DNA of 64,000 bases from Blastocladiella emersonii ATCC 22665 (GCA_025594325.1 JANHCV010000002.1:434001-498000); one strand, 5' to 3'. Counted from the first letter of the stretch, positions 1-28,738 are shown. Notes: generated by a model from the sequence alone, not told the origin. Translations and numbers: made by a program.

Positions 1-2548
1 ACTCAGCCTCGGACGCGGCCATGCTCGCGATCGCGGCCAGGACACCGACGTGCATCTCCTCGACCGACGGCAGGATCTGCTCGGGCGGCAGCAGGAACCC
101 GTACTCGCCAATGTCGCGGAGCTATGAGAAGGTGCAGGGTGAGCGGCGACGGCGGCGCGATGGTCTCGGGCGCGGCGTAGCGTACCTCGACGGCGAACGA
201 GTACGTGACGTTGGCCTTCTGGAACATCCAGTCGGTGCCTGACCCGCTCGTCTACACGAACACAGAGTGAGCAACCGCAGCACTGCCGCCCTCCCCAGTC
301 GCTCGCTCTCATACCGGGTAGATGGTCTTGCACACGTCGCCCGTGACAAACTCCATGCCATGGACCGAGTACACGCCGTCGGCGCCCGCGACCGCGGCTT
401 TCGCGAGCCGGGGCTGCGCGGGGAACGAGTCTTCGCAGTTGTACCCGTACGGGTACATCCACAGGAGGCTGTAGCTGTGGGTGTCGAGGGCGAACTGGAG
501 CGCGCCGCCCGTCTCGCGCTGGAAGGCGGTCACGAAGTTGACGATGGCCGTGGCCTCGGGCGAGCTGCCGGGCGCGGTCCCGCGGAACGTGTCGTCGCAC
601 GCGTCGGGGGAGGAGGCGTACAGGTCGAGCGGGTCGCTCCATTCGTCGGTCGGGAAGCTACACGGTGCGGGAACGAGTGAGGGTCGGTGGTCACGGTCAC
701 CATGGTGCTTGGGAAGCATACTTGCGGTTGATGTCGACGCCCATGCACTCGTCAGCGTAGACCTCCGTGTTCTTGCGCCACTACACCCGCGAGCCGCGCG
801 TCAGTTCAACCCCAACAGGCAATCGGTCGGCGAGCCACGTACCAAGCGGTCGAACGCGAACGAGTACTCGTACCCGTCGGGGTTGAGCATGGGCGCGATG
901 ATCAGCTCGTACGTGTCGAGGAGCGCCGTGACGTGCGGGTCGGTCCCGTACAGCGCAGCCCACACGTCGAGCAGGTTCAGCAACACCGACTACAACGTGT
1001 TCGAGCGAGATTTAGCCACCAGCCAGCGAACCAGTCCTCGTGCGTGCGCGTACCGGCGCAATCCACTCGCGCGCGTGCAGCCCGCCCGAGAAGAAGATCG
1101 CCGGCTTCCCCGTTTTCGGGACCGTGACGCCGCTGACGTTCATGGACCCGAGATCTCGCACGGGCGGCGCCGTGAGCCGCGCCCACAGCAGGTCGCGGCC
1201 CTCGTACGACTTGCCCATGGACGCGACCGTGACGAGGTCGGGTTTGGCCGCGGCGAGCCGCGCGAGGTACGCCTTCATGTCGGTGAAGTTGAGGTACCGG
1301 CCGGCGAGGTTGGCGGCGGCGCCGGCCGAGGTCCAGTTAAGCGCTGGGCGGACGGTGGGTTCCGGACGCGGCGAGGCTGTGGTGGTGGTGGAGGAGGTGC
1401 CGCCGTCGGTCGCGGTCTCGGTCTCGGTCGCCGTATCCGTCTCGGTGGTGGTCGATGACGAGCCCGTCGCGGTGGGATCGGGGACGGTCCGCGACCCGTC
1501 GCCGTCGGTCGACGTGGGCGACGGAGACGGCGAGCCCGAGGTGACGCTGGCGGATTGATATCGCCGCGGCGCGACGCGGGACGAGGTCGCGGGTGGCGGC
1601 TGTCCCGCGCACGGCAGCGAGCTGGATGAGGAGCCAGGCAGTGGCGTCGGGTCGACGACGGGCGTGGCGATAGTCCACGACGCGGACGCGCGTGAGGTGG
1701 CGACGACCGAGAACGCGGTCGTAGTCCCGGGCAGCACAGGAGCCGTCGCGACGTCGGCAAGCACGTCGGCGAATGCGCGCGTCGCGAAAGTCCCTACGGC
1801 GGCGACCTGCACGTCCGGGATGAGCGTGTGGTACTCGGCCTCGGGGAAGCGTTCGCGGACGACGGCGAGCAGGTCGTCGCACACAAGGAGATCCATTTCG
1901 ACCGATGCGCTCTCGGCATCCTCGTCGTCGTCCTCGGGCTCCTCGCTCGGCGAGCGGGGACCGATCCGACCGCGGCGAGGGCGAGCGCGGGTGCGAGGTC
2001 CCGCGTGGGAGCGGATGGTGGCGGCAACACGTTCACGTTGCCGTTGTGCGCTGCTGGAGCTCGAGGTGCTCTTGCGCGTGCTCCACACGTCGATGCCGTA
2101 GTCCTAGACGCGGCGTGATGCGGGTGAGCCTCGCACTCCCGAAACCTCGCATCCACGCGTTCCGTACGTGGGCAAGCTTGCGCAGCACGCGGGCGTCGCG
2201 CTTCGAGTCGAGGAGGAGGCGGATGAGTCGCTGGTTGTTGTATCGGACGCGTGTGCGCGGTTTCGGGCCTGCGCCACCGCGCGCGCGGGGCCGGCGCATC
2301 CGCGCGGCGAACGCCGAGATGCGCACGGCACCACCCTCCGCCTCCGTCGCCGCAGAGGCAACGCGAGGGGTAGCCGGCAACGCGTCCGCGCGCGGGAACG
2401 ACGGGCTCGCGATGATCAGGGCGAGGACGGCCACGGCGGCAAGGGCGAGCGTGACGACGAGGCGGGCAATCCCCGCGCGCTCCATGCGCGCACGAAGAGT
2501 CGGCCGCGCAGCGGTGCGAGTGGCGACGAGGTGTCGGAGCGAGTCCAT
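1..2548 (-). CDS. Secreted M14 zinc carboxypeptidase, multi-exon; C-terminus reaches the window edge
   Basis: N-terminal hydrophobic signal (LVVTLALAAVAVLALII), HAREW zinc motif, NPDGYEYS, WRKN..GVDINR, DTHSYS, ELRDIGEYGFLLPPEQI, assembled across GT-AG introns (e.g. 990-1053). Start may be 2548 or the next Met (MERAG). Confidence 0.9.
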
Positions 2549-4217: not shown

Positions 4218-4698
4218 GGGGTGAGGAGCATGGGGTGGAGAGCGCCCGACGTGCGTGGTGAGCTGCGCCGACCAACGTTCCTGCCGCCCTCGCACAGCTG
4301 ACCGCGATGAAATGAGCGACGCGTGGCACCCACCGGTTTTTCGTCGCCGCCAACACATTGAGCGAGGCCACCTCACTTCCGATCCCTGCCCGTTTACTCC
4401 CGAGGACATCCGATGGCGGCGCCCGCACGAACGCGCGAGCAGCAGCGGCCGGTGGCTAAACGAGGCAGGTCGGGCCACGCGGAGCGAAAACGGGGAGGAG
4501 CGCTGGTCGGTGGCAAACGCGAGCTCGCTGCCTCTTTCTCGCCCGCCCACCGTTTCGGCTCGGAACCGAGCTGACGCTCGCCCCGCGGCGGCGTGGTGAG
4601 GGCTGTAAAGCGGGCGGAGCCCTCCGCAGTCGACTCCCGCTCTCCACCGCCGTCGGTTCGACCCGTTTGTTCCTCTCCGCTACGCATCAACACCAACC

Positions 4699-5478
4699 AT
4701 GACCGTCCCCGCCACCAAGACCGACGGCGCCGCCGCCGCCAACCCCAAGCCCGAGACCGTCCCGGCGCCCGCACGTGCTCGCGGCGGCAACGACCAGTCG
4801 GGGACCAGCTGGTTCGTGGGCACTGTCCCGCCGCCGCCCCACCACATGTACAACGCCGCGCCGCCCGCCAAGGCCGGCGGCACCGCGACGGCTGACGGTG
4901 CTGCCGCTCGCGGCTCGGGTTCGACTGCTCGCGGCTCGGGCTCGTCGTCTCGCGGCCCCGCTGGCGCCGAGGCCGCCGCCAAGGACAGCGGCGACGCCGA
5001 GGCCGGCGAGATGCCGCCGTGCTGCTGGAACTGCGGCACGCCGCCCGCCGTGTTCGCTGGTCCCGCGCCCGCCGACGCCGCCGGTCCCGGGACGCGCGCC
5101 TGGTCGCTTTTCCCGCCCGCCGTTCCCGAAAACTGGGAGTCGCCGGCGGGCCACCGCGGCGTCGCGCCGCCCATGGAGGGCGCGCGTGGCGGCCCGCCGC
5201 TGACCCCAGTGTGGTATAACTACGAGCCGCGCGGCGCCGGCGGCGTGCGCGGCTACAGCAACCCGGACCCGTACGGCTGTGGGTGGTTCTACGGCGGCAC
5301 CGGGCTCTGCGGCGGCTCGCGCGGCGTCGCGCCGCCCATGGCCGGTGCGCGCTACCTGCCCCCGATGCGTGGCGCCCCGCAGTACGTGCATGGCGGCGAC
5401 GACGCGTACGGCCCGCCGCCGTCGTGGTTCTACGGCGCCCGCGGCGCCCGCGGCAACTGCCGCTGCGGCGGGTGCTGA
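4699..5478 (+). CDS. Orphan Gly/Pro/Tyr/Cys-rich cassette protein A (putative metacaspase substrate/peptide precursor)
   Basis: Intronless 259-aa ORF with ATG in acc-ATG context. The block 5251-5445 matches 8197-8388 with mostly synonymous differences, which supports this reading frame. Contains PPCCWNCG and PMxGAR repeats. Confidence 0.75.
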   Translation: MTVPATKTDGAAAANPKPETVPAPARARGGNDQSGTSWFVGTVPPPPHHMYNAAPPAKAGGTATADGAAARGSGSTARGSGSSSRGPAGAEAAAKDSGDAEAGEMPPCCWNCGTPPAVFAGPAPADAAGPGTRAWSLFPPAVPENWESPAGHRGVAPPMEGARGGPPLTPVWYNYEPRGAGGVRGYSNPDPYGCGWFYGGTGLCGGSRGVAPPMAGARYLPPMRGAPQYVHGGDDAYGPPPSWFYGARGARGNCRCGGC

Positions 5479-5683
5479 GTGCGCGGTGGTGTCGAATGGT
5501 GATCGCGGCCGGGCGGCTGCCCGCGTGGATCGTCTCGTTTTGTGCTCGATTGTCTCCCATCCCTTGTAACAAAACATCTCGTTTGCGTTTGTGCCTACCT
5601 ATCAAGAACCCTTCTCTCCTTGAACCGAGACCACAACCGCCGTTTGAAGCGCGACCGCGAAAGAAGTTGCGTGGGCTGAACGC

Positions 5684-5701
5684 GTGAGTGGCGCAACGCG
5701 T
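5684..5701 (+). promoter_or_regulatory. 18-bp element GTGAGTGGCGCAACGCGT, copy 1 (copy 2 at 7476-7493)
   Basis: Exact 18-nt match located ~310 nt upstream of the metacaspase ATG and ~340 nt upstream of the gene C ATG. Confidence 0.5.
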
Positions 5702-5918
5702 GCTCCCCGCGATGCGGGCCGTCGACGCTCCCGTCGCCGGGCATGTTGCCGGTGAGTGCCGAACGAGGAGCTAATGCGAGTGGAGCATCCAGCAACGGGC
5801 AGCAACGGCGAGCGGTTGAAGAGGGCAAGTCGGGCGTTCCGGCCGGGAACACGGGCGAACGCGAGCGCTCTCCGTTCCCGCGTTGGCTTCCCTGGATCCC
5901 CCAACCGGAGCACCGGGG

Positions 5919-5928
5919 CTATATAAAG
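5919..5928 (+). promoter_or_regulatory. TATA-like box upstream of the metacaspase
   Basis: ctatataaag about 70 nt upstream of ATG 5995, in otherwise very GC-rich DNA. Confidence 0.55.
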
Positions 5929-5994
5929 CCGGCGGCGGCCCTCGGTCTCCTCGCTTGCTCCTGCAACAGCCAGTACTGCTGCGCATCGACCATC

Positions 5995-7287
5995 ATGGGT
6001 AACAAAGCACGCTGCTTCGGGCTCTCGTACCCGACTGGCCAGGGTGCCAACCCGATCCCGGGTACGCTTGCTCAGCCCACGGCATGACGACGGGCCAGTC
6101 GCTCAATCTCCTCCCGCGACCCGCATCTAGGCTGCGACGTCGACGCCAACAACATGGCCAAGATCGCGCGAATGATGGGCATCCAGGACGTGGTAGTGTA
6201 CAAGGACGACGTGGCGCCGGTCACGCGCGCGCAGATCCTCGGCGCCCTCGAGGACATGGTCTACAACGCGTGCGCCGGCGACACGCTGCTCTTCTCGTAC
6301 GCCGGCCACGGCGGCCAGACCAAGGACGAGTCGGGCGACGAGTACGACCTGCTCGACGAGTTCCTCGTGTGCGCCGACGGCATGATCCTCGACGACGAGG
6401 TGCGCGCTCTGCTCGCGTGCCTCCCCGCGGGCTGCCGCATGGTCGTAGTTTTCGACTGCTGCCACTCGGGCGCCATGGTCGACCTCGAGAACAACACGCA
6501 CGAGCTCCAGGCCGAGATCGTCGCGCTGTCGGCCGCGCTCGACTCGCAGGAGTCCATGGGATTCACCACCGGCGGCTGCTTCACCTCAGCAATCATGCGC
6601 GTGCTCGCCGAAAATAACGGAATCTCGTGGATCGACGCGGCGCCGCTCATCGGCGAGTACGACAACATGCGCTCGCAGAAACCCGTCCTCTCGTCCAACA
6701 TCCCCGACGGTACTATTTGCTCTCGCACTCCGCTCGGGCCCGACCAGCTCACTCACCTTGTCCTTGCGAGCCTGGTAGCCCTCAACAAGCCCGCCTTCGC
6801 GCCCGTCGGCACCTTCGCCGACGCGTCCAAGGGCTCGCAGTTCGCCTCCACGGTCAACCCGTTCGCATCGGCCGAGGAACAAAAGCAGGACGCGCCCGGC
6901 GCGCCCGCCGCCGCCGCGTCGACGGCCACCGGCAAGACCCAGACCGCCGCGCGCCCGGCCCCGTACCGCGGATACCCGTACTTCATCCCGTACGCCAACA
7001 CGCAGTTCTACCCGTACGGCGTGCCGATGACGGGTTTCCGCGGGAACGACTGGTCGCCGTCGCCCGTGTACGGCTTCGGTCCGTTCGGCCCCTACGGCGG
7101 TGGCCGCGGCGCTGCGCCGTGCTGCTGGAACTGTGGTGCGCCCCCGGCCGGCTTAGCTGTCCCTGCGCGCCCCATGGAGGGTGGGGGTGCCCGCAGCGCG
7201 GGAAGCTGGTTTTCTCCCTGCCCGAGCGGCCGCGGATTCGCGCTGCCCATGGAGGGCGCCCGCGGCCTCGCCCGCTGGCTGTTTTGA
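5995..7287 (+). CDS. Metacaspase (peptidase C14, type I-like) lacking an N-terminal prodomain, with a C-terminal cassette tail; exons 5995-6061, 6131-6709, 6779-7287
   Basis: GCDVD, SYAGHGGQ (catalytic His), DESGDEYDLLDE acidic Ca-site region, ILDDE, VFDCCHSG (catalytic Cys), p10 FTSA..QKPVLSS. Introns 6062-6130 and 6710-6778 are GT-AG and keep the frame. Confidence 0.92.
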
Positions 7288-7475
7288 CTGATTCGCCTTG
7301 TTCGATTCCCGTCGTATCGCCCGCTCCCGTCCCTGAGTATCACATCGTCTCAACAGAACCCCTGGTCTCAAACTTTGCGCCTCCTTCCTCCTACACCCAG
7401 GGCTCTTTCTTCCTTGAGGCACACGGTCGCTGCCACCCCTGTCGCTGCGTGGAGCGTCGCGTCCAAACTCAACAT

Positions 7476-7493
7476 GTGAGTGGCGCAACGCGT
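7476..7493 (+). promoter_or_regulatory. 18-bp element GTGAGTGGCGCAACGCGT, copy 2
   Basis: Identical to 5684-5701. Confidence 0.5.
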
Positions 7494-7818
7494 CTCCTCA
7501 ATCTGCCACAGTCCGCCTGTCACTTTGAAGTCGCATGTCTCGCTGGTCGCGCGGCTTTTTGAGACCACAAAAGCGGGCGAATGTTTCCCGAAGAAAGCTG
7601 GGATTTGAGCGTGAGCCGGGGTTCGGTGGGTTGCCGAAAGCGGAAGGTCGCTGCAGAAACGGGGAGAAGGCACCTGTACGCAAACGCGAGCACCTTCGTT
7701 CGTCGCTCACCGTTCCCGCGGGCCGCCCGGGCGCTCTAAAGTCGGCAGAGCCCCCGCGCTACCCACCCGCGCTCTCTTCGCGGCTAGTTCGACCAAAACC
7801 CTCTCCGCATCAACAACC

Positions 7819-8496
7819 ATGACCGTGACCAACAACAACAACAAGCCCCAGTCCGGCTCGCGCGGCGCCGGCGGTCCGGCCCGCGGCGCTCCCGCCGAGA
7901 CCGAGACCGAGACCAAGCCCGCCACCCCCAAGACCGATTCAGGCGACGCTGCCGGCGACGACAGCGGCGCGCCGCCCATGTTCGCGTACGGCCCGCCGCC
8001 GTGCTGCTGGAACTGCGGTGCGCCGCCCGCGCCCGTCATGTTCGCCGGCCCCGCCCCACCCGCCATGGCCGGCGCTCGTGGCTACTTCTTCGGCCAGAAC
8101 GTAGCCGATCGGAGCTTCGCGCCTCGCGCGGCCGGTGCGCCCCGCTCAGGCCGCCCGTTCCCGCCCGTCCCAACCACGTCCCCGGGCGCCCGCGGCGGCT
8201 ACTCGAACCCGGACCCGTACGGCTGCGGGTGGTTCTACAACGGCACCGGGCTCTGCGGCCCGCGCGGCGTCGCGCCGCCCATGGCCGGTGCGCGCGACCT
8301 GCCGCCCATGCGAGGCGCACCGCAGTACGTGCACGGCGGCGACGAAGCGTACGGCCCGCCGCCCTCGTGGTTCTACGGCTCCCGCGGCAGCACCGAGCCC
8401 GCCATGTCGCGCTGCGGCGGCGCTGAGGAGCATCGCTGCGACCCGTGGACTCGCCGCCCGCCGCCGGGCTACTTCTACGGCGGCCTCTGGTGCTAG
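7819..8496 (+). CDS. Orphan Gly/Pro/Tyr/Cys-rich cassette protein C, paralog of 4699-5478
   Basis: Intronless 225-aa ORF with the same start context (gcatcaac..accATGACCGT). Shares PPCCWNCG, GYSNPDPYGCGWFY.GTGLCG, GVAPPMAGAR and GAPQYVHGGD.AYGPPPSWFYG.RG with gene A. Confidence 0.75.
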   Translation: MTVTNNNNKPQSGSRGAGGPARGAPAETETETKPATPKTDSGDAAGDDSGAPPMFAYGPPPCCWNCGAPPAPVMFAGPAPPAMAGARGYFFGQNVADRSFAPRAAGAPRSGRPFPPVPTTSPGARGGYSNPDPYGCGWFYNGTGLCGPRGVAPPMAGARDLPPMRGAPQYVHGGDEAYGPPPSWFYGSRGSTEPAMSRCGGAEEHRCDPWTRRPPPGYFYGGLWC

Positions 8497-27548: not shown

Positions 27549-28738
27549 GACAATGTTCTGCTTGAGGCTTAGGGGTAACGGGAGAGAAACTGGCGCATCG
27601 ACCGTCGCCCTCGAGGACGCGCAACCGGTGCAGCGGCCGCAGCGCGTTCCCAGGAAGTGTGCGGTGCGCGGTGCGCGGTCGAAACGGAAAATCGAAGATG
27701 TACCGCAAGGCATGACGCTACCGGTCGTACTGTCCCCCGATGAACTCCACAAGCATTTGGTCGCAACTTGAGGCATACCGTGCGGTCAGAATGTCAAACT
27801 GCCCCTCATCGTAAACTATGTTTCATACGGCTCAACAAGCTTCAGGTAGTTATCGGCAGCCTCGCACATTCATGGGGCCGTTTCGGAACTTCAGGAAAAC
27901 CTCTTGGCAGTGAGCTGACGCGCCACACTTGTGAGCTGGTTCGAGACACGACGCGTTGCGCCACTCACGTGCTTGTCTCGCACGCTGCTGCCACACGTCT
28001 CGCAGCGTGAACAGGAGGAGCAAAGGAACCGTGCGGTTGATGGCAGTGCTAACCTTCGCTGCAAGAGCTATGTGGCTCCTGTTCTGCGCAAATTCTGTTT
28101 TCATACAGTGCAACAGTCCAAGGCTGTGGCTGTTCGGTGTAGCCGGCGGCCGTGAGAGGAGGATTTAACCTGTGGCACTATATTTATTAAGGATCAATGG
28201 TTTTTTATCGATTGTTCCATCCGACGATCATTGGGATGTGATCCCAACTCAAAGGGCTCCCGTTTCCGTCACGATCGCGACGCTCAGGGCCACCGTCAGG
28301 GCCGCGCGTGTATCCCACCCTTCAAATCCATCCATGGTCGATTGGCTGGGACAAACGTCTGCGGACACGCCAAAGCAGACCATGGGTTTGGTCGACAAAG
28401 CGCGGCATTGTCTCACACCACCTGTCTTGAGCCGCGTTCGGGGGGATCCGGTACACTGACCCTCTATTCGCCTCGTCGCTCTCGCATGTGCAGCCGGTCA
28501 CTGAATGCAGCGGGTCACTTCCATGTAATGGAATCGCAAAATGTATCTTCTTCAGAAATTCGCACTCGTATGCATTGCGATCTGCGTGCTTCAGTGCCTG
28601 CATCCCGTCGCTGCGGATGCTGCGTTCAAGATCGCAGTCAACTTGCCATTTGACGATCCCGGTGCGGCATCATGTTAAGTTAACGTCCTCAATCTGGCTC
28701 ACGAGCGCCAGTGCCATCATCCAGGCCTTGGGCCGACC

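Follow-up and report, generated by a model that had tools for sequence, protein, structure and literature searches.

Tail-only paralogues beside a metacaspase gene of Blastocladiella emersonii as candidate partners or decoys of the enzyme

Introduction

Why would a metacaspase gene lie between two genes whose products resemble the tail of that metacaspase and contain no peptidase domain? This question is raised by a 3.8-kb stretch of the genome of the zoosporic fungus Blastocladiella emersonii ATCC 22665, in which gene A, the metacaspase gene M and gene C follow one another on the same strand. We analyzed the whole 64-kb stretch of contig JANHCV010000002.1 (assembly GCA_025594325.1) that contains these genes, hereafter referred to as the window, together with related genes elsewhere in the genome. 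A first-pass annotation of the window had taken the three genes for a protease-plus-precursor cluster. With moderate confidence, we instead regard A, C and a third gene on another contig, D, as peptidase-less, tail-only paralogues of a young, Blastocladiella-specific metacaspase clade that would serve as partners or decoys of the enzyme.

Gene structure and shared motifs at the locus

The three co-oriented open reading frames (ORFs) of the first-pass annotation were found, with their motifs, where it had placed them. The start of M had to be corrected: rather than the ORF at 6154, it is a three-exon gene beginning at 5995. M corresponds to H9P43_002083 of NCBI (protein P0001, 384 amino acids) and occupies positions 439,995-441,287 of the contig. 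At the ORF level, the match of M to P0001 reaches only 94% identity, the shortfall being due to two introns; when the three exons are joined, P0001 is obtained exactly, and both introns are 69 nucleotides (nt) long with GT..AG ends. The second intron (6710-6778) is in frame and contains no stop codons; its splicing is predicted, and an unspliced transcript would carry a 23-residue insert near the core end. A and C are also called by NCBI, in an ab initio annotation (funannotate, 10,031 genes) that had no transcript input (PMC9730499). The main features are as follows (P0002 and P0003 are two related metacaspases encoded elsewhere in the genome).

4699..5478, plus strand: gene A, single exon, 259 amino acids (P0073), tail-only paralogue
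Gene A motifs, plus strand: CCWNCG at 5020; PMEGAR at 5170; GYSNPDPYGCGW at 5251; PMAGAR at 5335
5995-7287, plus strand: metacaspase gene M, three exons, 384 amino acids (P0001)
5995-6061, plus strand: M exon 1, MGNKARCFGLSYPTGQGANPIPG (splice model)
6131-6709, plus strand: M exon 2, encoding the catalytic core: GCDVD, YAGHGG (dyad His), DCCHSG (dyad Cys) and acidic residues of the Ca-site type
6779-7287, plus strand: M exon 3, core end, proximal tail and distal tail
6779..6873, plus strand: core end and proximal tail of M, ALNKPAFAPVG...NPFASA, conserved in P0002 and P0003
6874..7287, plus strand: distal tail of M, from EEQKQDA to the stop codon, with YRGYPYFIPYA, CCWNCGAPPA (7120), PMEGGGAR (7171) and PMEGARG (7246)
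7819..8496, plus strand: gene C, single exon, 225 amino acids (P0074), tail-only paralogue
Gene C motifs, plus strand: CCWNCG at 8002; GYSNPDPYGCGW at 8197; PMAGAR at 8278

A six-frame scan of the 64 kb located CCWNCG only in A (5020), the M tail (7120) and C (8002). The motif PM[EA]G..AR was likewise confined to A, M and C (5170, 5335, 7171, 7246 and 8278), and GCGW was found at 5275 and 8221 in A and C as well as in three unrelated matches elsewhere. A and C are 53% identical (BLASTP E = 4e-49). In composition-adjusted BLASTP, A aligns with the last 58 amino acids of M at 52% identity (E = 5e-09), and C matches the M tail with an E-value of 6e-06. Neither A nor C has a Pfam match at E <= 1, an ESM Atlas search gave an uninformative best score of 0.60, and no C14 similarity is present in A, C or D. 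A CCHC zinc knuckle (CX2CX4HX4C) was considered for the Cys motif and rejected: only C-W-x-C-G is present, with no His or fourth Cys at the spacing and no Pfam match at E <= 1.

The metacaspase core and its tail

M matches the Pfam family Peptidase_C14 (PF00656) with an E-value of 4.6e-15 (56 bits against a cut-off of 21.4). In an alignment of M with 22 metacaspase homologues, H82 (SYAGHGG) and C133 (FDCCHSG) are invariant, while D27 (GCDVD), D131 and D160 are conserved, as is an acidic cluster formed by E93, D95, D98, E99, D105, D110 and D111. The S1 Asp positions that had been pointed out at first pass (in GCDVD and DCCHSG) are thereby confirmed. By homology, D27, D131 and D160 would form an acidic S1 pocket for Arg or Lys, and the acidic cluster would be of the Ca2+-site type. 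Residues 1-225 were modelled by AlphaFold2 (AF2) with a predicted local distance difference test (pLDDT) score above 90, and the best Foldseek match to this core was Geobacter GSU0716 (3bij, E = 4.6e-18), followed by metacaspases of Candida glabrata, yeast, Trypanosoma brucei and Arabidopsis; E-values for metacaspase structures ran from 1e-13 to 5e-18. Judged from its sequence, the M enzyme is intact.

The domain layout of M differs from that of the three classical types. Its protein begins 8 residues ahead of the first core strand and has no type I prodomain, whereas Mortierella and yeast-type sequences in the same alignment carry prodomains of 100-200 amino acids; the p20-p10 linker is nearly absent (MVDLENNTHELQAEIV), which does not fit type II; and p20 precedes p10, which does not fit type III. 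The absence of a prodomain combined with a short linker is the prokaryote-type arrangement (PMC9820594). Behind the core, residues 227-384 are predicted to be disordered (pLDDT about 33).

Related metacaspase genes and a third tail-only gene

At least six related metacaspase genes are present in B. emersonii. We scanned 10 kb on each side of each related gene; the stretches around P0002, P0003 and P0004 are labelled L001, L002 and L004, respectively. M, P0002 and P0003 form a young subclade, with a synonymous divergence (dS) of 0.19-0.25 and a ratio of nonsynonymous to synonymous divergence (dN/dS) of 0.15-0.29 over 180 catalytic codons. All three have long tails that are rich in Gly, Pro, Ala, Arg and aromatic residues and contain Cys; the tail of P0002 includes SPCWHCGAPP, and that of P0003 has two copies of a unit of ~76 amino acids containing GPCGWGGSGYWNCSRGAAPA. 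This metacaspase clade is characterized by the lack of a prodomain, a short p20-p10 linker and a long disordered C-terminal tail. The tails of P0004, of its tandem neighbour and of P0005 are short and acidic. On contig JANHCV010000015, the tandem pair consists of short metacaspase genes of 290 and 287 amino acids (L004 8590-9521 and 10001-10925). The active-site motif of P0004 is altered to DSCSNG, compared with DCCHSG in the others, and P0005 has DCCHSE.

Gene D (P0075, 236 amino acids) lies directly downstream of P0003, in convergent orientation, on another contig. Its product starts with MTVPATKPD (MTVPATKTD in A), contains PPPCWNCGAPPAMF and PHMEGARG, and ends with a terminal Cys as in A and C. 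The start context and the N-terminal MTVPATK are common to A and D across contigs, with mostly synonymous changes. No A/C-like ORF was found around P0002, P0004, the tandem neighbour of P0004 or P0005.

An exhaustive search of 1.84 billion representative proteins with a profile of A, C and D returned only these three proteins and one spurious match (P0076, 801 amino acids, E = 1.9e-4), which on direct reading turned out to be an unrelated repeat protein; a word-indexed protein search with an A and C profile found only A and C. The linkage noticed in the window therefore recurs, since A, C and D all adjoin a tail-bearing metacaspase gene at two unlinked loci. The unlinked homologues of A and C that the first-pass annotation had suggested looking for were not found among annotated proteins (1.84 billion representatives). 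Its statement that no such locus had been described also agrees with our literature search, in which no paper was found linking metacaspases of Blastocladiella or Blastocladiomycota to anything similar.

Homology and turnover of the tails

Tails and free-standing proteins have a common composition, with 43-50% Gly+Ala+Pro, about 6% Arg, 8-14% Trp+Tyr+Phe and 4-9 Cys. In a semi-global shuffle test, D is collinear with the distal tail of M from EEQKQDA to the C-terminus (z = 7.5), and none of 400 shuffles reached the score; the same was true of the part before the CW motif taken alone (z = 4.6, 0/400). Corresponding pairs in D and the M tail are ATKPDA/QKQDA, PARGFPGDYLYTLPFA/PYRGYPYFIPYA, PPCWNCGAPPA/PCCWNCGAPPA, GGYWID/AGSWFS and GRGYAVAPHMEGARG/GRGFALPMEGARG. 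The M tail also aligned with A (z = 6.6) and C (z = 5.1), and the columns C-W-x-C-G-x-P-P are invariant across A, C, D, M and P0002 in the module alignment. Comparison of A or C with the P0002 tail was not significant in the shuffle test. For the P0003 tail, the C-terminal block of A gave a non-significant BLASTP E-value of 0.12, beside which the full-length semi-global result (z = 4.6-5.4) is suggestive only. Together with the BLASTP matches above, these z values uphold the earlier proposal that A, the M tail and C belong to one family. The M tail beyond p10 is a true member of it, since D aligns over the whole distal tail.

The catalytic cores of M, P0002 and P0003 are about 90% identical, whereas their distal tails can barely be aligned, and exact internal units are repeated in two of the enzymes and in D:

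L001 10001-11451: P0002, repeated exact internal unit of 16 amino acids
L002 10001-11663: P0003, repeated exact internal unit of about 76 amino acids
L002 12229-12939: D, repeated exact internal unit of 19 amino acids

Because the cores are so similar, the distal tails so different and the internal repeats exact and recent, we conclude that the tails turn over quickly by gain and loss of repeats.

Shared promoters and leaders

The homology extends upstream of the start codons. The 230 bp preceding the ATG codons of A and C are collinear with the 235 bp preceding that of P0002, the order of blocks being AACGGGGAG, 16-17 nt, GCAAACGCGAGC, a CT.TAAAG box, CGCTCTC, GTTCGACC and, before ACCATG, CGCATCAAC. 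When the upstream region of P0002 was compared with both strands of 300 kb, the best non-self matches were the promoters of A (5.6e-6) and C (0.003). A leader CGCATC[AG]AC followed by an ATG within 14 nt occurs seven times in 149 kb, and six of these occurrences are the starts of A, M, C, D, P0002 and P0003. In the longer form (GCT)ACGCATC[AG]AC, the leader precedes the ATG by 4-11 nt in all six family genes and in a uridine-kinase/UPRTase gene; as a start-site or leader signal it may be in wider use in B. emersonii.

4470..4698, plus strand: promoter and 5' leader of gene A, with blocks AACGGGGAG, GCAAACGCGAGC, TAAAG box, CGCTCTC, GTTCGACC and, just before the ATG, CGCATCAAC
7640..7818, plus strand: promoter and 5' leader of gene C; blocks and their order match those of the A and P0002 promoters
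M upstream region, plus strand: TATAAAG box near 5920 and leader CGCATCGAC at 5982
Leader (GCT)ACGCATC[AG]AC: window 4683, 5982, 7806 and 56215; L001 9981; L002 9984 and 12952 (minus strand); L004 3076

A 16-nt element, TGAGTGGCGCAACGCG, is a further upstream feature of some of these genes. It is invariant in sequence within unrelated flanks and lies in sense orientation 150-330 bp upstream of M, C, D and one unrelated gene, which encodes a 520-residue membrane protein with a cytochrome-b5-like end below the copy at 27951-27969. Allowing up to 3 mismatches, 0.03 copies were expected by chance in the window and 3 were found. The element is absent upstream of A, P0002 and P0003. It looks like a candidate transcription-factor site and gives a hint of co-regulation. 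Against the RFX X-box consensus, it has about 3 mismatches in 12 positions, and this match was not adopted. Genomic contigs have loose ends at 5701 and 7477, which suggests that more copies of TGAGTGGCGCAACGCG exist in the genome.

5685..5700, plus strand: TGAGTGGCGCAACGCG copy 1, about 295 bp upstream of the M ATG
7477..7492, plus strand: TGAGTGGCGCAACGCG copy 2, about 326 bp upstream of the C ATG
Window 27951-27969 (minus strand), L002 13095-13109 (minus strand) and L002 167-181 (minus strand, at the L002 edge): other copies of TGAGTGGCGCAACGCG

Coding status of A and C

Since the region has 74-77% G+C and long ORFs in every frame of both strands (e.g., an antisense ORF of 403 amino acids), the coding status of A and C was examined separately. 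A and C each have a G+C content at third codon positions (GC3) of 0.90, M has one of 0.89, and the range across A, C and D is 0.81 to 0.90. Of the 15 differences in a gapless, conserved block of 62 codons common to A and C, 9 affect third codon positions, and one Ser residue has switched between AGC and TCG. The annotated frame of this block gives a dN/dS of 0.31 with a dS of 0.18, while dN/dS is at least 0.94 in the other frames, except for the mirror frame in one of two sub-blocks; the mirror frame with the low ratio is not open over the conserved block. We take A and C, accordingly, to be genuine coding sequences that evolve under purifying selection, at least within the 62-codon block.

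Origin and possible role of the tail-only genes

Taken together, the free-standing genes keep a metacaspase-type promoter, 5' leader and distal tail and have lost the catalytic part. A gene with promoter, leader and distal tail and no peptidase is therefore most simply a duplicate of a metacaspase gene from which the catalytic region was lost. The opposite course, in which a tail-less enzyme acquired an older free-standing gene by fusion, is disfavoured because it would leave the shared promoters unexplained. In dS, the A/C block is comparable to the catalytic domains. Given shared promoters and a young family (dS about 0.2), the adjacency of A and C to M follows from local duplication and needs no functional coupling.

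As for function, the tail may replace the missing prodomain as a targeting or gating region of the enzyme. The tail-only proteins, which are probably co-expressed with it, might engage the same partners or the tail itself and, by analogy with the CARD-only proteins discussed below, could be decoys, competitors or co-assembling clients of the enzymes that recruit them, buffer them or compete with them. One could speculate that the lone invariant CxxC half-site pairs between chains around a metal ion. A, C and D may also be cut by the enzyme, as they have the same Arg-Gly sites as the tail, and the roles of partner and substrate are compatible.

Several observations weigh against a role of A, C and D as partners or decoys. 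P0002 has a tail and no tail-only neighbour. Clear promoter homology is confined to A, C and P0002; the common features of M, P0003 and D are limited to the leader, a TATA-like box and short blocks. Before the CW motif, the parts of A and C are not significantly similar to the tails in the shuffle test. Outside the block of ~62 codons, A and C diverge fast with many indels, which also fits relaxed constraint. The AF2 prediction that A is fully disordered, without secondary structure (pLDDT 44), comes from a model built on a three-sequence alignment only. Finally, A, C and D are ab initio gene models, and the decoy role is drawn from analogy.

Alternative explanations

Some of the same observations would be expected if A, C and D were by-products of tandem or segmental duplication with internal deletion, i.e., fast-drifting orphan disordered proteins, perhaps heading for loss, with no functional coupling to the enzyme and a merely historical place beside it. 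This explanation is possible, though we doubt it. It fits a young family (dS about 0.2) that is restricted to one species among the 1.84 billion representative proteins, whose free-standing members cannot be aligned over much of their length and show many indels and recent internal tandem repeats, and whose tails differ greatly between enzymes with ~90% identical cores. It also fits the ab initio origin of the gene models and the fact that P0002 manages without a tail-only neighbour. On the other hand, drift does not readily account for three ORFs that have stayed open across 225-259 codons with a GC3 of 0.81-0.90, for the dN/dS of 0.31 and the synonymous switch of Ser codon family in the A/C block, or for a CW motif that is invariant in five proteins. 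Nor does it readily account for the intact TATA-type promoters or for the start context and MTVPATK of A and D, which were kept across contigs with mostly synonymous changes.

A second alternative stays closer to the first-pass annotation: A, C, D and the M tail could be polyprotein precursors that the Ca2+-activated metacaspase cuts at Arg-Gly, releasing defined cytosolic peptides, for example 24-mers and 10-mers, as damage signals or for further modification. We consider it unlikely. What speaks for it is the excess of Arg followed by Gly (12/16 in A, 8/15 in D, 8/15 in the P0003 tail and 5/9 in the M tail; p below 0.01 against shuffles), compared with 0/7 in the M core. In addition, in-silico cutting after each Arg or Lys yields fragments of the same lengths in A and C (24, 10, 6 and 24) and, in D, P0002 and P0003, repeated units that are identical; acidic S1 residues are present in the enzyme; the linkage is repeated at a second locus; and the release of Pep1 from PROPEP1 by plant MC4 provides a precedent. 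However, Arg-Gly enrichment is equally typical of RG/RGG disordered regions and of DNA rich in CGC-GGC, and cleavage itself is a prediction from the Arg-Gly spacing. Apart from one A/C block, the supposed peptides are not conserved between paralogues at a dS of about 0.2, which would be unusual for bioactive cores.

The setting of the genes does not help this alternative either. As had been stated at first pass, no signal peptides are present: the maximum Kyte-Doolittle mean over 11 residues at the N-terminus is 0.45 in A, -0.19 in C and 0.91 in D, with no segment resembling a signal or a transmembrane helix. No tailoring enzyme is annotated among the neighbours, and the nearby M14 carboxypeptidase is signal-anchor-like and hence would act in another compartment. 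Two hallmarks of a cluster for ribosomally synthesized and post-translationally modified peptides (RiPPs) or related precursors (borosin or dikaritin/KEP type) were not found: the called neighbours include no tailoring enzyme, and A, C and D have no conserved core peptide, bar the one A/C block. The reading of the linkage as a protease-plus-precursor arrangement was not sustained, as duplication (shared promoters, young family) accounts for the adjacency, and with the linkage explained by descent it loses its main argument. The analogies drawn at first pass with borosins, RiPPs and macrocyclisation have no basis in the sequence beyond the Arg-Gly spacing. It is improbable, too, that the Arg-Gly tails and tail-only proteins are cytosolic metacaspase substrates forming a fungal counterpart of plant PROPEP/MC4 signalling, with one substrate fused to the enzyme and the others adjacent and under a shared promoter type.

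Finally, it is very improbable that A and C are long ORFs that arose by chance in DNA of 74-77% G+C and were then called by gene finders working ab initio: long ORFs in every frame, an annotation without transcript data and the lack of any Pfam, Atlas or structural signal would fit, but only the annotated frame and its mirror, which is not open over the block, have the GC3 of 0.90, the third-position bias and the dN/dS of 0.31 are found, among open frames, only in the annotated one, and A and C share protein-level homology with the tail of a bona fide gene as well as the TATA box and leader common to metacaspase genes.

Comparison with known systems

The closest parallel for peptidase-less, tail-only paralogues of a protease gene is offered by the CARD-only proteins encoded beside CASP1, which arose by caspase gene duplication and in humans act as decoys without enzymatic activity (PMC3775265). 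COP/CARD16, INCA/CARD17 and ICEBERG/CARD18 are, like A, C and D, small lineage-restricted genes beside a C14 (clan CD) protease, and in both cases local duplicates have kept only the non-catalytic region; A, C and D, too, are duplicates of a protease gene that have kept a non-catalytic region and have no peptidase domain. The kept region is a disordered C-terminal tail in B. emersonii and a folded N-terminal death-fold domain in the CARD-only proteins, the enzyme is a metacaspase instead of a caspase, and the decoy function is proposed here by analogy. Promoter homology is shown here, whereas the duplication of the CARD-only genes was deduced from coding similarity and adjacency (PMC3775265). 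Caspase-1 already provides a case of a protease-less paralogue next to a C14 protease; what is new in the present case is the metacaspase, the disordered C-terminal tail and the demonstrable retention of the promoter.

Disordered appendages are known from other metacaspases. In yeast, the prodomain of Mca1 is Pro- and QN-rich and mediates localisation to aggregates, and high Ca2+ in vitro induces its removal by cleavage at R72 or K86 (PMC5053244). In Arabidopsis, disordered regions of MC1 drive its recruitment to and release from stress granules (PMC10473220), and in TbMCA2 a Pro-rich N-terminal segment spans the active site (PMC9820594). The M tail resembles the Mca1/Yca1 prodomain and the MC1 prodomain and 360 loop in being a low-complexity, Pro-rich, disordered appendage on a metacaspase core. 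Unlike these prodomains, it is C-terminal, consists of Gly, Pro, Ala, Arg and aromatic residues with Cys instead of Gln and Asn, and also exists as separate genes. The Mca1 and MC1 appendages direct the enzyme to aggregates or condensates.

The prodomain of MC1 contains an LSD1-type zinc finger (PMC10473220). LSD1 fingers are ancient and have a complete CxxC...CxxC, in contrast to the single CxxC half-site found here in a disordered context with no zinc-finger Pfam match (E <= 1). The likeness is that a free-standing protein has a Cys motif in common with the non-catalytic part of a type I metacaspase and reportedly regulates the enzyme through that part. LSD1 reportedly binds Arabidopsis MC1 and regulates it negatively (Coll et al. 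2010). The LSD1 gene is not adjacent to that of MC1, unlike A and C, which lie beside M.

Geobacter GSU0716 has, as M does, no prodomain and a very short linker (3bij; PMC9820594), but M is a spliced nuclear fungal gene with fungal-type codon usage and a long C-terminal tail.

With plant PROPEP1/MC4, fungal KEX2-processed repeat proteins and borosins, the locus shares repeated units bounded by basic residues and a basic-specific protease encoded nearby, and, as in borosins, the enzyme has one copy fused to it. PROPEP genes do not cluster with MC4, and the fusion partner of borosin precursors is a methyltransferase instead of a protease. Unlike known peptide precursors, A, C and D have no signal peptide, no core conserved across paralogues and no tailoring enzymes nearby.

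Neighbouring genes and sequencing depth

The called neighbours of the locus comprise an M14 carboxypeptidase, two genes without a Pfam match, a TmcB-like TPR protein and a CRAL_TRIO protein. The carboxypeptidase was considered as a trimmer of Arg-ended peptides and dropped as a cluster member, its signal-anchor-like N-terminus indicating another compartment.

1-2548, minus strand: M14 carboxypeptidase gene, two genes upstream of A, with a hydrophobic signal-anchor-like N-terminal segment (IARLVVTLALAAVAVLALIIA)

No RNA run was listed for the 3.8-kb stretch. Three DNA runs covering it are genomic and stem from one sample, with even intergenic depth and no intron-skipping joints. In all three runs, the depth of genomic contigs rises 2- to 4-fold over the catalytic exon (window 6148-6609), which is consistent with near-identical words common to P0002 and P0003 rather than with a copy-number difference.

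Significance

The regulation and targeting of metacaspases are poorly understood outside yeast, trypanosomes and plants. B. emersonii provides a natural experiment, in which nearly the same catalytic core occurs three times, each time with a very different disordered tail, and three tail-only genes share the promoter type of the enzymes. If the tail-only proteins bind or compete as proposed, they would be, as far as our literature searches found, the first dedicated decoy-type regulators of metacaspases, and in parallel with the CARD-only proteins of caspase-1 the same solution would have evolved twice in family C14. If peptides are released from them, metacaspase-released signalling peptides would be extended from plants to fungi. 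If neither is the case, the locus would be a clear example of gene birth by domain loss with the promoter retained.

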